From sequence record NC_047995.1: a stretch of DNA of 64,000 nt; one strand, written 5' to 3'. Below the pieces are notes generated by a model, which saw only the letters and a list, made by a program, of their open reading frames with translations, did no database searches and was not told the origin of the DNA. Positions 5,400-62,636 of this stretch are shown piece after piece (position 1 is the first letter of the stretch; every line of letters starts with the position of its first letter). The position numbers and the translations under genes were made by a program.

Positions 5400-5612
5400 A
5401 TGAGTAAGCATTATAATCCGTTGCTTAACAACTCTGTAAAGTCAGAGTCAAGTGACAAGTCGGTTAAAAGCACCAGCGCTGCTTTCGCTGTTGAAAGCGC
5501 AAACGTGTGTCCGAAGTGTGCTTCATCTACCGTGCCTACACAACTGCTTTCAGGCGAAGGCGTTATGTTCTGCACGGGCTGCCGCGTAAGTCTCGCAATC
5601 CCTTTGAAGTGA
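5400..5612 (+). CDS. small zinc-ribbon protein
   Basis: CPKC ... CTGC, AAGGA RBS, between terL and portal. Confidence 0.75.
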   Translation: MSKHYNPLLNNSVKSESSDKSVKSTSAAFAVESANVCPKCASSTVPTQLLSGEGVMFCTGCRVSLAIPLK

Positions 5613-9966: not shown

Positions 9967-10497
9967 ATGACGGACAAGATTACGCAGTTGGAGAAGTGGT
10001 ATGATGCAGCAAAGACGGCGTTCAAGATGGGACAACACAATCCCAATGGAAACATCGCGCTGCTGTTGAGTATTCTGGCTCGCCTGAACAAGACAGTTGA
10101 TGAAGCTGCTCCTGGTCCTGTGCGCGAACAGGCTGAGTTCGAACGCAACCAGTTCCTTGACGAGCTGGCTGCCGAAGTGAAGATGTACGAACTCATTCGC
10201 AAGCGCTTCAACAACGACCTGTACCCTGGTATTACTGTGAGCGAAGACGTGAAGGTGTACGTCGCGCTCATGTCCGATCGCCCTGGCTCTGCTGTGATGG
10301 CGATGACCTTCCTGCACCTTGCCCGTTGCTACACGCTCAAGGACATGATCATTAACTTTCTCCCGAATGGCTTTCCTGCTGAGGACGCACTTGGCCTCAC
10401 TTGGAGCATACAGAAAACAGACGCCGGAAACCTGGTGGATGATATTGATTCTGTAAATAGCCTGTATACTAAGATGTATAACTCTGGAGATAAGTAA
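9967..10497 (+). CDS. hypothetical protein
   Basis: 176 aa, GAGG RBS. Confidence 0.7.
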   Translation: MTDKITQLEKWYDAAKTAFKMGQHNPNGNIALLLSILARLNKTVDEAAPGPVREQAEFERNQFLDELAAEVKMYELIRKRFNNDLYPGITVSEDVKVYVALMSDRPGSAVMAMTFLHLARCYTLKDMIINFLPNGFPAEDALGLTWSIQKTDAGNLVDDIDSVNSLYTKMYNSGDK

Positions 10498-16872: not shown

Positions 16873-17160
16873 ATGATTGACGACATTATTGTAGGCCACA
16901 TTTATAAATCATCTAATGGCTATCCATATAAAGTGGAAGGTCGCGCCGAACACGGACAAAACCCAGAAGACAATCGGGTGCAACTCCATAACTTGACCGA
17001 AACTCCCTTGTATACCAAAGGACATAAGTTCAGTATGCGAGAGTCCGAGTTCAAGGCAGCCTTCTCTGTGTATACAGAAGGAGAGTACCATGAACACAAC
17101 GTTAAGGCATCATCTGAAATGCCGCCACTTCGATCCTGCATTCTACCATTGCTGGGTTAG
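16873..17160 (+). CDS. DUF1653-like small protein
   Basis: GHIYKSSNGYPYKVEGRAEH ... MRESEFKAAF; AGGAG RBS. Confidence 0.55.
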   Translation: MIDDIIVGHIYKSSNGYPYKVEGRAEHGQNPEDNRVQLHNLTETPLYTKGHKFSMRESEFKAAFSVYTEGEYHEHNVKASSEMPPLRSCILPLLG

Positions 17161-17603
17161 CGAAACGCAAATGACCGTGCCGTTGTTCTCGTTTGATAGA
17201 GCAATGCGCGGTCTACAGGTCTACACACCAGATGCACCTAAGCACGATAAGAATCCGAAAGCCTGTCGTTACTTCACGCGAGCGTTCGGCGGCAAGCAGT
17301 TGGTGTGGGGATCAGAAATTAAACCTGAACGGGTCGACCGTGTTCTTAACTGAGTCTGTCTTCAAGGCGTGTGCGTTACATCGTCTTGGACTCAATGCTT
17401 GGTCCGTTCTTGGTTCAAACGTGAGCGAGTACCTGCACCACCAGCTTCGCATGTTGGGTCTACGTTTCGTCTGCTTAGGCGATAACGATAAAGCAGGGCA
17501 GGAGTTTAGTCAGACGTTTGGACTAGGCGCTGTCAGCAATGACCTTGACGAGATGCCTGATGAACAGCTACTCGATCTAACTTTACCCTTCCTGAGGAAG
17601 TAG
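17090..17603 (+). pseudogene. small primase-like TOPRIM protein split by a +1 frameshift near 17316-17318
   Basis: ORF 17090..17353 gives the N-half (MTVPLFSFDRAMRGLQVY ... RYFT ... VWGSE). The overlapping frame gives TOPRIM VFLTESVFKA ... VLGS ... LGDNDKAG ... NDLDE. Removing one A from GAAATTA fuses them. Confidence 0.7.
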
Positions 17604-20278: not shown

Positions 20279-20666
20279 AGCAACCGACTCCGAAGTACGT
20301 GCGTACTACCAGAAGCAACATGATCGGGCAGAAGCCACTATGCGAGAAATCTGGGCGCTGCGTGGTTGGACGATTCGCTGGGAATGGCACAATGGAGTAT
20401 GTGACGACTGCGAGTTCCTATTTGATGAAACAGGCAAGCAGATGTTCCCGTACCATGACGCGATTCCGCAGACACATTCGATTGGCAGTTATATTGAGAA
20501 GCATCGCCTCAATGTTACGTTCACGAAGAAATCTGTAAAATTGATTAACAAGCAAGACCCCAACCCAGTTGAAGGTAAAGCCGACACATTACGTCAGGCA
20601 TATCTCAACTGGTTGCTTGCACTGGAAAAGCAGAAAGCTGAGGAGAAAACGTGCGCTGCGATCTGA
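20256..20666 (+). CDS. hypothetical protein
   Basis: In-frame ATG 20256 after AGGAG within track ORF 20175..20666. Confidence 0.65.
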   Translation: MYHPLGDKATDSEVRAYYQKQHDRAEATMREIWALRGWTIRWEWHNGVCDDCEFLFDETGKQMFPYHDAIPQTHSIGSYIEKHRLNVTFTKKSVKLINKQDPNPVEGKADTLRQAYLNWLLALEKQKAEEKTCAAI

Positions 20667-21172
20667 AAGAATTACCATTAGCATTAGACCAAGCTGAACA
20701 TATCATGGCGAGTGTTTTCACGCTGGCCGCTTCATCTAAATCGAAGCGTCGTGCAACTGCCGCCCTGCTCATCCATTTCCACAACGGCTTCCCGACTATT
20801 GTGAGTAGTGGTGTTAACGGCACTGAGCCTGGCACAAGCAACGTCATGGAGAACGATGATCTGACGCTCTCGCTCAACACTGTCATCCATGCTGAGGAGA
20901 ACTGCCTCAATCGCATGGAAGAATACAGTCTGTGGGCGAACGAAGAGGACATCCTGTTCTGCACAGATTCCCCTTGCCCTAATTGTCTGGCTTACCTTGA
21001 GTGCGAAGGCGTTAAGACCGTTGTGTATGCGCGTGAGTACCGCCTGACTGATCATCTGGACGCATCTGATATCAAGATGTTCTGTCTGGACATGAAGTCA
21101 GTAGAGCATCGTATGCTTCGCGGCATCGAGCGCATGAACGAAGTTATCGCAACAACACCAGCGTCTGAATAA
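20651..21172 (+). CDS. dCMP deaminase
   Basis: GVNGT, zinc motifs HAEENCL and SPCPNC, YAREY. Confidence 0.9.
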   Translation: MRCDLKELPLALDQAEHIMASVFTLAASSKSKRRATAALLIHFHNGFPTIVSSGVNGTEPGTSNVMENDDLTLSLNTVIHAEENCLNRMEEYSLWANEEDILFCTDSPCPNCLAYLECEGVKTVVYAREYRLTDHLDASDIKMFCLDMKSVEHRMLRGIERMNEVIATTPASE

Positions 21173-21877: not shown

Positions 21878-22360
21878 GTGGAACCTTTCCTGAAAGATAT
21901 CAAAGATCGTTTCGCTGCCGCACTGGGCATTGACCCTAAGATTCTCGATGCACCTGTGGACGAAGAATCTGTTGAACGTTTTAGCGCGTTCATGCGTGAA
22001 GACCAACGCAAAATCAAAGTGGGCATTGCACTCTGCCACCTTCAAATTCCAGATGATGTTCGATACGACCTGTTGCACAATCATCTGGACACGACTGAAC
22101 GCTTACTGCGTGAAACGTTCGACGGCCTCGCTGCCCAACTCGTTGCTGTTAACGGCACAGGTGGTGGCGATGAAAAACAAGCGGCGTCTGGTGCGTATCG
22201 TCTAGCTATGCTGATGAACATCCTGGGCTTCGACAACGAAACACTGAAAGGTGTGCTTACCGACCCAAGCCTTACTCGTCAGGCTGGTCTTATCGCTATG
22301 ACTGGCCTGAACGATATGGGTCAGAAAATCCAACAACTGTACGACGAGAAAACAAAATGA
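21878..22360 (+). CDS. hypothetical protein
   Basis: 160 aa, AAGGA RBS. Confidence 0.7.
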   Translation: MEPFLKDIKDRFAAALGIDPKILDAPVDEESVERFSAFMREDQRKIKVGIALCHLQIPDDVRYDLLHNHLDTTERLLRETFDGLAAQLVAVNGTGGGDEKQAASGAYRLAMLMNILGFDNETLKGVLTDPSLTRQAGLIAMTGLNDMGQKIQQLYDEKTK

Positions 22361-22521
22361 GCAACCCGACCAATCCATTAGCAGATTACTTTGATGCAGA
22401 CGCAGTTATCCCAGGTGTAGACGATGCAGAAGATCGCGTTGAAACTATGCGTGACGGTGGTGGCGAAGTCGTTGACGAGAAAGATGCTGATGGCTGTGAA
22501 AGCGGCGCCTGCAAAATCTAA
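22357..22521 (+). CDS. 54-aa acidic peptide ending in the NrdA C-terminal redox motif
   Basis: MSNPTNPLADYFDADAVIPGVDDAEDRVETMRDGGGEVVDEKDADGCESGACKI; ATGA overlap with the upstream gene; terminator right after; too short for the ORF track. Confidence 0.8.
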   Translation: MSNPTNPLADYFDADAVIPGVDDAEDRVETMRDGGGEVVDEKDADGCESGACKI

Positions 22522-22524
22522 CTC

Positions 22525-22552
22525 ATGGGGCCTAGTGCCCCATTTCTGTTTT
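22525..22552 (+). terminator. intrinsic terminator
   Basis: ATGGGGC-CTAGT-GCCCCAT followed by TTCTGTTTT. Confidence 0.7.
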
Positions 22553-22561
22553 GAGGGAATC

Positions 22562-23101
22562 ATGCAAACAGCATACCGTTGTAAGCATTGTAAGTACGTC
22601 CACGTAGGCAAGGTGAGTAGCTGCGACTGCAACAACGCTCGTTTTGAATACACGTTGGTGCATATCATCGACGTGCCTGAAAACGAGGAGCAGGTACCTC
22701 CGTTCAAAGACTTGCGCCACTCTCGTGAGCAAATGATCGTCAACTACAAAGACGGTCAGACGGGAAATGGCATCTATGCCTATCTCGGTACGCGTGAATC
22801 AATAGCTGGTGGTACTCGTCCTGACACTCAAATGCTTGGTACTATGTCAAGTACGATTGAACGTGGCAGTCAGACCTATCGCCAGCAAGAAGCGAACCAA
22901 AGAGCTAACTGCGTGTTGGCTGCCGCTGGTCCTGAGTTGCTGGAAGTCGCCTACATGTGCTATCAGTATTTCAATTTGAAACGCGAAGTGCAGGGCAGTT
23001 CTATCAAGAACGATAGCCGTATTTCCATTATCGCGGAGACCATTCGCAAGGCGACTGATATCTCCGTTTACGACACACCACAGGACTTCAAATATGATTA
23101 A
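22562..23101 (+). CDS. hypothetical protein with N-terminal CxxC/CxC zinc motif
   Basis: YRCKHCK ... SCDCN; ATG 22562 after GAGGGA. Confidence 0.7.
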   Translation: MQTAYRCKHCKYVHVGKVSSCDCNNARFEYTLVHIIDVPENEEQVPPFKDLRHSREQMIVNYKDGQTGNGIYAYLGTRESIAGGTRPDTQMLGTMSSTIERGSQTYRQQEANQRANCVLAAAGPELLEVAYMCYQYFNLKREVQGSSIKNDSRISIIAETIRKATDISVYDTPQDFKYD

Positions 23102-25029: not shown

Positions 25030-25333
25030 TCTGCTGTTGAAGATGTTCGGTCAGAACAAGCCGTTCATCGTCGTGCGTCGTGATGCCATTGTTGAAGAAG
25101 GAAAATCATTCGGAGATCGTGTGTACTTCTCCAACGGTACCAACACTGTTACTGTGCCAAACATTCAGGGCCTTGACCTGGGTGATAAGCTCTACGTCGC
25201 AGAAGACGGTGACGTGTATGAGTGGCATCCTCATTTCGAGCGTCCGTACGAAGCTGTGTCAAACAATCAGACCGAAGCGCTCGCGTTTGGTCTTCATCCC
25301 ATTATCTTCCATACTGACAGTCGGAATATCTAA
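24983..25333 (+). CDS. hypothetical protein
   Basis: 116 aa; TAATG coupling to thyA. Confidence 0.65.
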   Translation: MKMPTPVILLKQQTRDLLLKMFGQNKPFIVVRRDAIVEEGKSFGDRVYFSNGTNTVTVPNIQGLDLGDKLYVAEDGDVYEWHPHFERPYEAVSNNQTEALAFGLHPIIFHTDSRNI

Positions 25334-26430
25334 TGTCACAACCTCTTGATCTACGCAACCCAAACCACTTCGAACTGTACTCCCTGCACTGTGTTGACGA
25401 GCAGTACATCAACCTGTGTGACGCTATCATTGCTACAGGTACGCAAGAGTCTGACCCTGCGCGTACCACTGACGAATGGCTGACGCTGATCGGCGTTGGC
25501 TTCCAGTTGCAAAATACCCACATCGCTTTCCCTGCGCTACTCGGCGCACGTAAGAACTGGTCGGCTGCCGTCGATGAATCATGCTGGATGATGCGCGGTG
25601 AAACGAACATCGAATCACTCAACTCTAAAATCTGGGACTTGTGGGCAGACGAATCTGGTGAGTGTGGGCCAATCTACGGCGAACAGTGGCGCCGTTGGCC
25701 TGATATCAAAGCGTTTCACGACTTCACCAAACCTTCTGGTGTTTGTCCTTCGGCGGACGCTATTCGTGTGCGTGATGAAATCCTGCGTATGCGTGAAGAC
25801 GGCTATATCGAAACGCAACTAGCTGACGGTCGCATCCTGTTTGAAGGTCAGATCGATCAGTTTGCCAATGCGCTGTACCAGATTAAAAGCCGCTCGCGTT
25901 CTCGTCGCATACGTGTTCAGGCGTTCAATCCTTCTTATGTGAATATGCAGGGCTTGCCTCCGTGCCACACAGAGTTTGAGTTTAACGTAACGAAGTCAAC
26001 TCGCTACGAACAGGCTCAGGCAGAAGCACGGGGACAAGTTGTTGCAGAAGACAGTCTTCATATCACGGTCCAGCTCAGATCAAATGATTGTCTACTCGGG
26101 CGCCCATTTAACATCATGGGCTACAGCGCAATGCACCAGATGATCGCGAAGTGGGCCGGTCTGAATGTTGGTGGCTTTACGCTTAACTCTACCAACACTC
26201 ACCTGTATACGCACCACATCGAAGCGTATCAGACGCAACGCGCTCAGTGGATGCTGTTGCGTGAGCGTATGCAGAAGACTGGTGAGCCTGTTAAATACCC
26301 TATTCTGGAAATCAGCGACGACATTCTCGGCCTGACGCCAGAGCAGTTACTCGATAACGCAAACGTAGACTGGTTCGAGCTGGTGGACTACAGCCCTCAG
26401 CCTGCGGTCAAAGGACGTGTGACCAAATGA
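25333..26430 (+). CDS. thyA: thymidylate synthase
   Basis: IWDLWAD, GPIYGEQWR, catalytic LPPCH, LRSNDCLLGRPFN (Asn = dUMP specificity), THLYTHH. Confidence 0.93.
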   Translation: MSQPLDLRNPNHFELYSLHCVDEQYINLCDAIIATGTQESDPARTTDEWLTLIGVGFQLQNTHIAFPALLGARKNWSAAVDESCWMMRGETNIESLNSKIWDLWADESGECGPIYGEQWRRWPDIKAFHDFTKPSGVCPSADAIRVRDEILRMREDGYIETQLADGRILFEGQIDQFANALYQIKSRSRSRRIRVQAFNPSYVNMQGLPPCHTEFEFNVTKSTRYEQAQAEARGQVVAEDSLHITVQLRSNDCLLGRPFNIMGYSAMHQMIAKWAGLNVGGFTLNSTNTHLYTHHIEAYQTQRAQWMLLRERMQKTGEPVKYPILEISDDILGLTPEQLLDNANVDWFELVDYSPQPAVKGRVTK

Positions 26431-29102: not shown

Positions 29103-31232
29103 ATGATCATCAAGCCGCCTACTATGAAGGAAATCAACAAGCTGGATAAACCCTGGCGTGGTATGAGTTTCTTCGCAGGTTGCGGTGGGTCTTCTACCGG
29201 TCACAAGATGGCCGGTATCAACATCCTGTTGAGTAACGAGTTCGTGGACTCTGCCCGCGAATCTTACGAAGCAAACCATCCGACCACCAAAGTGCTGCCT
29301 CATGATATCCGTCGTCTGGACCCAAGCAAGCTCATGCGTTATTGTGGCTTGGCGAAAGGCGAGCTGGATTTACTTGATGGTAGTCCTCCGTGCTTTACCG
29401 AAGACACGATCATTCATACAGCAGACGGCATGAAGTTCATCTCGGACATGAATGTCGGCGATCAAGCAATGACCTCAGTTGGTCGTTACTTCCCTGTGTA
29501 CGATACGATGGTGCGTCCATACGTCGGTACGATGCACAAGATCGAAACGCTGATTAGCACGAACAACGCAACTCCCGAGCATCCATTCTTCGTGCGTCGT
29601 AGCACTGCACCTGGCGAATATAGCGAGCCATTCTGGTGTGATGCAAAAGACGTGCAAGAAGGTGACTTAGTTGGTACTCCGCGCACGACGCCTGACATGG
29701 GCCTCGCTGTGTATGAAGATCAGCTGGCACAACTGCCGAAGCAGATTGCAGAGTGGGTAACATTCCCAGAGTTCTGGTGGATGATTGGTCACTGGTGTGA
29801 TCGTGGTTCAATTGAAACTGTTAGCGGCGTTGAAGTCGTTAGCTTTGAATCGCATTCAAGCCTTGAGAATGCGATGATTGAGCAGGCGTTTGATGCGATG
29901 AAGATCAGCAGCCTGAATCGTATTGACACGATGACAGCACAACGCAAAACGTTCCGTATCGTTATGGACGCAGAGCTGGTGCAGTTCTTACGTCGATTCG
30001 TATCTCAAGGCTACAACAAATTCTCTCGTCGTCTGCCTGCGATTATCTTCCACATCTCGCAGGAACTAAAGCAGCAATTCATTCTCGGTTGTGCTGGTCA
30101 TGACTACGTGACTGCGATGGGTGCTGGTCTGTCTATCACGTCTGACTCACGCCGCTTCCTGCTTGAGATGAACTACCTGTGCTGTTCTGCATTCAACAGA
30201 CCTCTGTTCGATGGTCTGACTTGGGGTGACGTGTACTTCGGCCATGCGATGACTCCACGTGATCGTAACAGCTCGAAGCCTCTTATCGGTTACCTGTTCC
30301 TGCAGGACGAGCACAACTTCTTCTATGAGTTCGGTCTGGACGATCCCCACCTGTGGACAGAAGTGATTGAGAACCTCGCGTATCAGGCGACCTGTGACGT
30401 GTACAACTTCTCCGTTGAGACGGACGAGACATACGTTGCTAACAGCGTGGTCGTTCACAACTGCAAAGGCTTCTCTACTGCGGGTGTGAAAGAAGAAGGC
30501 TGGGGCAAGGAAGTTAAGTACAGCGATAACAAGTATCAGCAGGTTGATGACCTGTTCGATCAGTATTGCCGTATGCTCGAAGGTATGCAGCCGAAAGTGT
30601 TCACTGCGGAAAACGTTAGCGGCCTCGTTAAAGGTGCGTCGAAAGGCTACTTCATTGAAATCATGAAGGAGTTCGACCGTCTGGGCTATTACGTGCGAGC
30701 GCCTATGCTCAATGCAGCGTGGCTTGGTGTGCCGCAATCCCGTGAGCGTATCATCTTCATGGGCGTCCGCAAAGACGTAGCGAAAGCACTCGGGTACACA
30801 ACGGCTGCTAAGGCTGTGCCTGATGTTATTCCGTGTGATAGCATGGCATTCCTTGCAGACGCTCTGCCTCACATACAGCGTTACAAGTCAACGAAGAAAG
30901 ATATCATCACCTATCTTCCTGCGATGAATGGTCCGATGCCTACGATTACTGCCGCCGATGCGATTGCGTATGAGACTGCGCGATTCTCGTCTGCTGGCTT
31001 TGTCGAAGATAACAAAGGCCACAGGCGTAAGTTGACTATCGACGAACTCAAAGTGATCTCTGGCCTGCCGTCAGACTACAAACTGAAAGGCAAGTTCGAG
31101 GAGCAGTGGGAACGTCTTGGTCGTATCTGTGTGCCTGCAATGACACACGCTGCGGCTAAGGCTCTTATCGAACACATCCTGATTCCTTATGCGAAGAAGC
31201 GTAAGAAGAAGCCAGGCGATATCTTCAAGTAG
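29103..31232 (+). CDS. C5-cytosine DNA methyltransferase-fold enzyme, probable carboxymethyltransferase, intein-containing
   Basis: Motif I FFAGCGG, motif IV GSPP|C after splicing, motif VI AENV, motif VIII QSRER, motif X LGRIC (Arg where Asn is normal, codon 31122-31124); ATG 29103 after GAGGG. Confidence 0.9.
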   Translation: MIIKPPTMKEINKLDKPWRGMSFFAGCGGSSTGHKMAGINILLSNEFVDSARESYEANHPTTKVLPHDIRRLDPSKLMRYCGLAKGELDLLDGSPPCFTEDTIIHTADGMKFISDMNVGDQAMTSVGRYFPVYDTMVRPYVGTMHKIETLISTNNATPEHPFFVRRSTAPGEYSEPFWCDAKDVQEGDLVGTPRTTPDMGLAVYEDQLAQLPKQIAEWVTFPEFWWMIGHWCDRGSIETVSGVEVVSFESHSSLENAMIEQAFDAMKISSLNRIDTMTAQRKTFRIVMDAELVQFLRRFVSQGYNKFSRRLPAIIFHISQELKQQFILGCAGHDYVTAMGAGLSITSDSRRFLLEMNYLCCSAFNRPLFDGLTWGDVYFGHAMTPRDRNSSKPLIGYLFLQDEHNFFYEFGLDDPHLWTEVIENLAYQATCDVYNFSVETDETYVANSVVVHNCKGFSTAGVKEEGWGKEVKYSDNKYQQVDDLFDQYCRMLEGMQPKVFTAENVSGLVKGASKGYFIEIMKEFDRLGYYVRAPMLNAAWLGVPQSRERIIFMGVRKDVAKALGYTTAAKAVPDVIPCDSMAFLADALPHIQRYKSTKKDIITYLPAMNGPMPTITAADAIAYETARFSSAGFVEDNKGHRRKLTIDELKVISGLPSDYKLKGKFEEQWERLGRICVPAMTHAAAKALIEHILIPYAKKRKKKPGDIFK
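29391..30461 (+). mobile_element. intein (357 aa) with degenerate LAGLIDADG region, in the MTase catalytic PC motif
   Basis: Starts CFTEDTII, block B ATPEHPF, block F VYNFSVE, ends VVHN followed by Cys; WMIGHWCDRGS and FILGCAGHD look like decayed blocks C and E. Confidence 0.92.
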
Positions 31233-61892: not shown

Positions 61893-62636
61893 TTAGAAGT
61901 ACAGACTATCACAGTCATCAAGGCTGCAACGCAGTGCTTGGTAGGCCGAGACACGTTCTTCCGTTAGATTGATATACTTATCGTCAATATTGTACTTCAC
62001 TCGCATAGGCACTTCGTACCCATCAAGTAAGCCATGTCGCTTATATGCGTTCAGGCGTAGCACAGGTGAACTGACCCGACCAAGTTCCATGATGTTCAGG
62101 TCAATCTTGTCAGCGTATATGAAAGGCCGCTCCCGCTTACACAAGATGTAATCTATCTCATGCAAATTAAAGAGTGTGAAATTCATATAGCCAATAATGA
62201 ACTCCGCAATCAGCCTGAACGATTCGAACATGTCAGGCCTAAATTGTTGTGTGAGAATCTGATCAACGTAGGGTCTGATCTCGGTACGCATCTCGTACCA
62301 ACTCTCACAGAACAATGCAGGGAAGTCTTCAGGGTGATGGGCCATAAGGCCCAACACTTCTTTCTCTGTATCTGCGAAAGAGTATAGGATGTCGGTAACG
62401 TCATCGGACGCCTCGACACCTCTACCCGTGGAAATGAAACGTCGCTCAATGTCTCGTAACCACGACTCTGATGCAGATAGGTATTGAAGCAGTGTTTCTC
62501 TAGCGGCTGCCGAGAACTCATGCCTGTTTGAGTCAAGAACCTCACCAAGCATGAAGGCTTTCGCTTTGTAGAAATCACTATAGCGTTCGGCGGTGAATCG
62601 TCGGAACCCTATGTTATTCCTCAAATAGCCCATCAT
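61893..62636 (-). CDS. hypothetical protein
   Basis: 247 aa, ATGA overlap. Confidence 0.7.
   Translation of the reverse strand: MMGYLRNNIGFRRFTAERYSDFYKAKAFMLGEVLDSNRHEFSAAARETLLQYLSASESWLRDIERRFISTGRGVEASDDVTDILYSFADTEKEVLGLMAHHPEDFPALFCESWYEMRTEIRPYVDQILTQQFRPDMFESFRLIAEFIIGYMNFTLFNLHEIDYILCKRERPFIYADKIDLNIMELGRVSSPVLRLNAYKRHGLLDGYEVPMRVKYNIDDKYINLTEERVSAYQALRCSLDDCDSLYF

Follow-up and report, generated by a model that had tools for sequence, protein, structure and literature searches.

A small acidic protein of the giant Erwinia phage vB_EamM_Alexandra ends in the redox tail of enterobacterial ribonucleotide reductase

The Erwinia phage vB_EamM_Alexandra encodes a 54-residue protein, gp034, whose final 10 residues match the C-terminus of Escherichia coli NrdA without exception (BLASTP E 6e-6 in a pairwise comparison), NrdA being the alpha subunit of class I ribonucleotide reductase. 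The formation of DNA precursors is gated by ribonucleotide reductase, and two cysteines in the tail of E. coli NrdA, which we take to be residues 754 and 759, carry electrons from thioredoxin or glutaredoxin to the active site; to our knowledge, the C-terminal tail is the sole route by which these electrons reach it, and the only partners of the NrdA tail known to us are thioredoxin, glutaredoxin and the NrdA active site itself. It is probable that Alexandra taps the DNA-precursor supply of its host through gp034, by a route that has not been described. The stretch of DNA that was analysed, referred to here as the window, corresponds to bases 1-64000 of the Alexandra genome (266,532 bp; MH248138 / NC_047995; 100% identity). 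Among giant phages, Alexandra belongs to the PaBG/Lu11-related group and not to the nucleus-forming phages (PMC7412058; bioRxiv 10.1101/2023.02.24.529968).

The gene had been proposed in a first-pass annotation of the window as a free-standing, acidic reading frame of 54 codons that ends exactly as NrdA does, and both the translation (15 Asp and Glu, 4 Lys and Arg, 2 Cys, pI ~4.05) and the ending, compared with that encoded by a retrieved E. coli nrdA, bear this out. It had not been overlooked by annotators, as was then supposed, since GenBank and RefSeq already carry it as Alexandra_34 and HOT49_gp034, a 'hypothetical protein'. The ATG of gp034 overlaps the TGA of gp033, an arrangement that suggests translational coupling of the two genes, and a terminator-like hairpin followed by a run of T begins 3 nt past the gp034 stop codon (Table 1). 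Both features, likewise noticed at first pass, are retained in relatives down to 65% protein identity, the TGA within the ATGA being confirmed as the stop of the upstream gene in Alexandra alone.

Searches with phmmer returned no match to gp034 among PDB sequences or in Pfam, where no family was reached even at E 1; the tail match is too short for the phmmer and Pfam filters, and the E. coli nrdA end was retrieved via a blastn hit. When supplied with the family alignment, AlphaFold2 gave a mean pLDDT of 61, with a lone helix and the remainder as coil at low confidence, and this low-confidence model fits a largely disordered protein. With a single predicted helix, and with no Pfam or PDB sequence match, gp034 shows no sign of a thioredoxin fold. 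The GGGE motif that follows the predicted helix probably lends flexibility at this point, as a hinge for the tail.

Table 1. Positions of gp034, of its parts and of other features discussed in the text (window coordinates unless another record is named)
Feature	Coordinates	Strand	Description
gp005	5400..5612	+	70 aa; RefSeq 'DNA ligase'
Two adjoining 87-aa ORFs	17090..17603	+	both RefSeq 'DNA primase'; 14-nt overlap
gp031	20651..21172	+	dCMP deaminase (PF00383, E 5e-10); two genes upstream of gp034
gp033	21878..22360	+	160 aa, unknown function; coupled to gp034 (suggested by the overlap)
ATGA start/stop overlap	22357..22360	+	gp034 ATG over gp033 TGA
gp034	22357..22521	+	54-aa acidic protein; relatives match PHROG 10239
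Predicted helix, gp034 residues 21-34	22417..22458	+	AlphaFold2 with family alignment
GGGE motif, gp034 residues 34-37	22456..22467	+	invariant in 32-sequence alignment
Last 10 codons of gp034 (DGCESGACKI)	22489..22518	+	same as enterobacterial NrdA C-terminus
Intrinsic-terminator-like hairpin and T-run	22525..22553 (hairpin 22525..22543)	+	7 bp, 5 G-C
gp035	22562..23101	+	past the terminator; PHROG 1273 match (function unknown)
gp041	25333..26430	+	thymidylate synthase (PF00303, E 7.5e-58); 2.8 kb downstream of gp034
gp046	29103..31232	+	annotated hypothetical
gp100	61893..62636	-	RefSeq 'ABC transporter'
PCH45 NrdB	record 124783..125889		80% identical to E. coli NrdB
phiR1-37 g117	L029:2459-2614		most divergent family member, without GGGE

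The gene sits between those for a dCMP deaminase and a thymidylate synthase, all three on one strand. The latter, gp041, is annotated as a 'hypothetical protein' and, at 365 aa, exceeds a typical thymidylate synthase by about 100 aa. The upstream neighbour gp033 resembles Y3_037 (52% identity) and was not found beside the module in other lineages; as a client of the tail it was discarded, since it is not kept next to the module beyond the Alexandra/Y3 lineage. On the other side, gp035 carries two N-terminal, zinc-ribbon-like Cys-x-x-Cys pairs. Elsewhere in the window, gp046 is a C-5 cytosine DNA methylase with matches, in its N-terminal part, to Hint and intein-splicing domains, and looks like an intein-containing methylase; the paired 'DNA primase' frames may represent a split gene or over-annotation; and the RefSeq names given to gp100, for which no Pfam match was found at E 0.001, and to gp005 look unsupported.

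The resemblance to NrdA is exact and short. In a blastn search, the DNA encoding the tail found its match at the 3' end of nrdA in all but one of 5426 complete E. coli genomes (5425), and a degenerate DNA pattern for the decapeptide and its stop codon found at least 120 matching stretches, with one match each, in a set holding one genome per species; among the matches listed (at least 120), all are ends of enterobacterial nrdA, with several Erwinia and Pantoea species included. From these Erwinia congeners we infer that the tail would also be identical to that of NrdA in the actual host, E. amylovora. Profile-profile comparison of the family with NrdA tails (hhalign) aligns the last 12 columns with a probability of 94.5% and E 7.6e-8, and significant likeness is limited to the last 10-12 residues of gp034; hhalign gives no support for carrying the likeness further upstream, as far as the 'RDG' at the end of the NrdA fold. 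DNA identity to nrdA amounts to 26-32 of 33 nt (the best match, 32 of 33, being to a Pantoea species) and is limited to about 33-36 nt, with flanks at random level on both sides. A recent capture from host nrdA was not retained as an explanation, since such a short identity fits micro-conversion or convergence alike. The module of gp034 very probably has its origin in the 3' terminus of an nrdA gene.

The resemblance could in principle be convergent, the Cys pair binding Zn or Fe or serving some other purpose than thiol exchange, with the NrdA match a coincidence or a by-product. The likeness does span just 12 residues, the spacing of the two cysteines ranges from two to four among relatives, and metal binding is conceivable for an acidic peptide that has two Cys. 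However, ten identical terminal residues, including non-Cys positions and the final Lys-Ile, lie far beyond chance, a metal site formed by no more than two Cys would be a poor one, and the spacing in natural reductase tails likewise ranges between two and four residues; convergence is thus considered improbable.

Like the tail of E. coli NrdA, then, gp034 has at its very end a pair of cysteines, presumably redox-active, with four residues between the cysteines and an acidic, flexible stretch before them. It differs from NrdA in having no catalytic body (its 54 residues include neither the N- nor the C-terminal domain of the large subunit, nor an ATP-cone), in its N-terminal motifs and GGGE hinge, which NrdA does not have, and in being encoded by a phage free of reductase. 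For want of catalytic domains, gp034 falls outside the NrdA family; what it carries is the terminal module of NrdA. The idea of a bipartite mimic, joining an NrdB tail to an NrdA tail, was rejected, since the N-terminal half is no closer to the NrdB tail than are composition-matched shuffles (z -1.2 for gp034, mean z 0.3 for the family), a lone subgroup reaching p 0.002-0.09.

Local tblastn with E. coli and phage NrdA and NrdB found no class I reductase alpha or beta in the 266 kb of Alexandra, the single match of these queries being gp034 itself. The annotation of the genome names no reductase, thioredoxin or glutaredoxin, and a heuristic scan for thioredoxin and glutaredoxin active-site motifs yielded zinc-ribbon-like contexts only. 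The early remark that no nrdA body is adjacent to the gene can therefore be extended to the whole genome, and a split or decayed phage nrdA was rejected because reductase sequence occurs nowhere in it. Whether an nrdA of this phage lacks its tail, which the first-pass annotation wished to see checked, does not arise, as tblastn and the annotation find no nrdA in Alexandra; its suggestion that the peptide complements a tail-less phage reductase is excluded for this phage by the same absence. It follows that the copied tail can act only in trans, on components of the host.

A decayed remnant of a phage nrdA, or a spurious frame devoid of function, would be a more trivial explanation, and an origin of the module in the 3' end of some nrdA would accord with it, as would the near silence in RNA-seq of the homologue in phage phiR1-37 (described below). 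Yet pN/pS at gp034 lies between 0.04 and 0.2 in every pairing of seven close relatives for which 5 or more synonymous differences were counted, several deep phage lineages have kept the gene, including invariant motifs beyond its NrdA-like part, its start overlap and terminator are kept, and the Alexandra genome holds no other trace of nrdA. The codon comparisons indicate that gp034 is under purifying selection and is a real gene, and decay, which the first-pass annotation had named as fatal to its reading, is scarcely credible.

The search for homologues that had been proposed at first pass revealed, by tblastn and profile searches, many phages in which the Cys pair and the terminal Ile are conserved. 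Homologues were detected by tblastn in about 70-86 phage records, while a word-indexed search of 5.8 billion proteins gave 31 family clusters and an exhaustive profile search of 1.84 billion representative proteins gave 38. Several relatives match the profile of PHROG 10239, a group with no described function or link to reductase (Yoloswag gp34 at 1e-10, Miami_244 at 2e-4 and PCH45_264 at 5e-4); gp034 itself does not reach E 0.01 against this profile, and is joined to the same three proteins by BLASTP at 1e-10 to 1e-12. The C-terminal Cys pair is present in all 61 family representatives; four residues lie between the cysteines in 49 of them, while 6 have a gap of three and another 6 a gap of two. 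The last residue is Ile in 59 of the 61, and the last two are Lys-Ile in 43. GGGE occurs within the last 30 residues of 57 of the 61, about 10 residues upstream of the ending, and is preceded in the family by a conserved acidic/hydrophobic N-terminal segment and a predicted helix; invariant motifs are also found outside the NrdA-like part. The exact host-type ending CESGACKI is seen in 5 of the 61 representatives, and the Cys spacing is not constant even within one host: Y3 and Alexandra, which share theirs, differ in it.

Judged from these sequences, the family is spread over several deep lineages of large Enterobacterales phages. Carriers related to PaBG include Alexandra, Y3, Yoloswag, Dickeya AD1 and JA11/JA29; those that form a nucleus include Serratia PCH45 and Klebsiella Miami; and further members occur in phiR1-37, in the SA002/SNUABM_37/FBKp24 group, in fHe-Yen9-02 and in metagenomic contigs of about 105-295 kb. 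The recorded hosts of isolated carriers are nearly all Enterobacterales, where the NrdA ends examined have the same tail, and the Pseudomonas phages within the PaBG group yielded no detectable homologue. One carrier, phage BUCTxx100, is recorded from Stenotrophomonas; it is nearly identical to Klebsiella phage Miami, with the same gene layout and a tail protein one residue apart, and on these grounds the recorded host looks doubtful. A metagenomic contig of ~105 kb, from a phage well below 200 kb, encodes a family member with the exact host-type ending (10001-10141 of its locus). This gene adjoins a family A DNA polymerase, and an anaerobic reductase NrdD, its activase and ThyX lie within 7 kb of it; since such contigs carry an anaerobic reductase, the carriers are not uniformly reductase-free. 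The homologue in phiR1-37, g117, has its own annotated ribosome site and terminator. Published RNA-seq shows hardly any transcript of it: its values are 3.9, 1.5 and 1.2, where most genes near it reach tens to tens of thousands (PMC4848604 supplement); these expression data cover one family member only, the most divergent of all (Table 1).

The module stands at the extreme C-terminus of every family member, whether free-standing or fused, and 13 of the 38 clusters have it as the last part of a larger protein (up to 462 aa). At least two unrelated N-terminal domains recur in such fusions, in addition to others: a domain X of ~110 aa (P0032, P0034, P0038, P0039), and a domain Z of ~200 aa with invariant His and Pro (P0033, P0037, P0040, P0048, P0058, P0061; L032:1793-2641). 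X and the tail form a single protein in SA002_0950 and are encoded by separate genes, 00102 and 00103, in SNUABM_37, where that for X lies upstream. X and Z both lack Pfam matches and conserved Cys, and since there is no invariant Cys, the tail cannot serve a disulfide of its own domain there. AlphaFold2 modelled a Z-tail protein with a pLDDT of 72, for which Foldseek found no informative PDB match and, in BFVD, uncharacterised phage proteins only.

This architecture evokes the possibility of a portable C-terminal dithiol tag unrelated to reductase, which would recruit thioredoxin or glutaredoxin, or provide a redox-active or redox-sensing end, acting in cis when fused and through the N-terminal motifs when free. 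The variety of unrelated partners and the fusion and fission of the same parts are what such a tag would lead one to expect. However, X and Z, apart from their want of conserved Cys, belong to no recognisable fold or family and are missing from both Alexandra and PCH45, and the exact host tail in the Alexandra clade, together with the near-restriction of the family to phages of Enterobacterales, points to the partners of NrdA, which makes a generic tag rather unlikely. The invariant run of three Gly ahead of a short, Cys-containing C-terminal part also recalls a ribosomal peptide precursor, in which an acidic leader ending in Gly-Gly would be cleaved to release a disulfide-looped peptide of 16-20 residues. 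No processing peptidase, exporter or modifying-enzyme domain was found among the neighbours of gp034, though, the 'ABC transporter' gene of the window has no Pfam support, and the longest fused forms are unlike a leader-core design; this reading is very unlikely.

The carrier PCH45 offers an informative comparison, as it encodes an NrdB close to that of E. coli (Table 1) with no NrdA in its whole genome (212.8 kb). Having beta without alpha, it must rely on the host alpha for its beta to work. PCH45 reportedly leaves the chromosome of its host undegraded (bioRxiv 10.1101/2023.02.24.529968), and so this phage depends on de novo precursor synthesis. An orphan beta and a free alpha tail thus occur together in this phage, the state of beta without alpha being established for PCH45 alone. 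Orphan phage NrdB proteins, including those of PCH45, of Erwinia RAY and Ea35-70 and of phiEcoM-GJ1-like phages, resemble gp034 in that the phage gives one part of class Ia reductase, a mobile or limiting one, and the host the rest; they differ from it in being whole folded subunits, whereas gp034 supplies the tail only. Host-like NrdB of ~74% identity was also seen in many other nucleus-forming phages and in the 52-kb phiEcoM-GJ1-like phages, and a review lists reductase beta among the genes conserved in more than half of giant phages (PMC13282480).

These comparisons lead us to propose, tentatively and on the strength of sequence, that gp034 may mimic the redox tail of NrdA in trans, entering the thiol relay of the host and raising or securing the output of the host reductase. 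Host thioredoxin or glutaredoxin would reduce the Cys pair of gp034, as they do that of the NrdA tail, and the protein would join the thiol-disulfide relay by which the NrdA active site is re-reduced after each turnover. Its acidic/hydrophobic N-terminal segment and helix would provide an anchor and GGGE the hinge, and gp034 would thus be an extra shuttle with a pro-synthesis effect, more or safer DNA precursors being drawn from the host reductase during infection. It is known that a free NrdA tail peptide is accepted in vitro by glutaredoxin 1, and that in the yeast reductase an alpha monomer can be served by the tail of its neighbour. Phage genes are otherwise known to act in the electron supply of reductase, as do T4 NrdC and the NrdH-type redoxins; these have a thioredoxin fold and a Cys-x-x-Cys motif, whereas gp034 is predicted to be disordered and resembles the acceptor of electrons rather than their donor.

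The same sequence evidence would serve equally well for a competitive decoy, an abundant free tail that soaks up reduced thioredoxin or glutaredoxin, or fills the route by which the tail docks at the NrdA active site, and in so doing damps the host reductase or other thioredoxin-dependent processes of the host. Peptides derived from the reductase tail are classical competitive inhibitors, and the additional conserved N-terminal motifs could supply the affinity that an inhibitor needs. Furthermore, the fungal proteins Sml1, Spd1, Hug1 and Dif1, which like gp034 are small, disordered and free-standing, are inhibitors of reductase, and Sml1 interferes with the regeneration of the active site by the alpha tail; they are, however, cellular proteins with no sequence relation to gp034 and no copy of the tail Cys pair. 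Since these known small, disordered regulators inhibit, a boost of the reductase is a weakly founded direction for the effect. A supporting role is nonetheless favoured over inhibition because the phage depends on the host alpha, because the neighbours of gp034 are genes of precursor synthesis, and because PCH45 pairs the module with an extra beta. For Alexandra, with no reductase, or for PCH45, with beta only and a need for de novo synthesis, a blocked host alpha would mean starvation, and a decoy is accordingly held to be unlikely, if less so than a generic tag.

Several observations nevertheless weaken the proposal of a tail that works in trans. A free tail competes poorly with a tethered one unless it is anchored, and the similarity to NrdA spans just ~12 residues. 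Most members of the family are inexact copies of the host tail; since the exact ending is confined to so few representatives and the Cys spacing varies, exact mimicry is not required. The fusions to unrelated domains fit a generic redox tag too, the phiR1-37 homologue is almost untranscribed, and one member is found in phage contigs with an anaerobic reductase.

In the searchable literature there is no account of a free-standing reductase tail, and no paper that joins giant phages with the C-terminal tail of reductase or contains the letters of the tail. In a wider, and slightly more speculative, form of the same idea, large Enterobacterales phages that lack alpha might commandeer the alpha subunit of the host by means of a detached redox arm, and in PCH45 by an orphan beta as well. 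If this is correct, viruses would have a way of governing deoxynucleotide supply that has so far gone undescribed, and no natural free-standing tail of a reductase would have been known before. A free tail maintained by selection in phages that rely on the host enzyme would show that such a tail functions, or is open to blockage, in trans inside the cell, and in gp034 biochemists who study reductase would have a natural tool with which to probe re-reduction. The gene would also stand for a new class of tiny viral genes acting on host metabolism that are invisible to domain-based annotation, and would provide the first functional lead for PHROG 10239, a family common to nucleus-forming and other giant phages.
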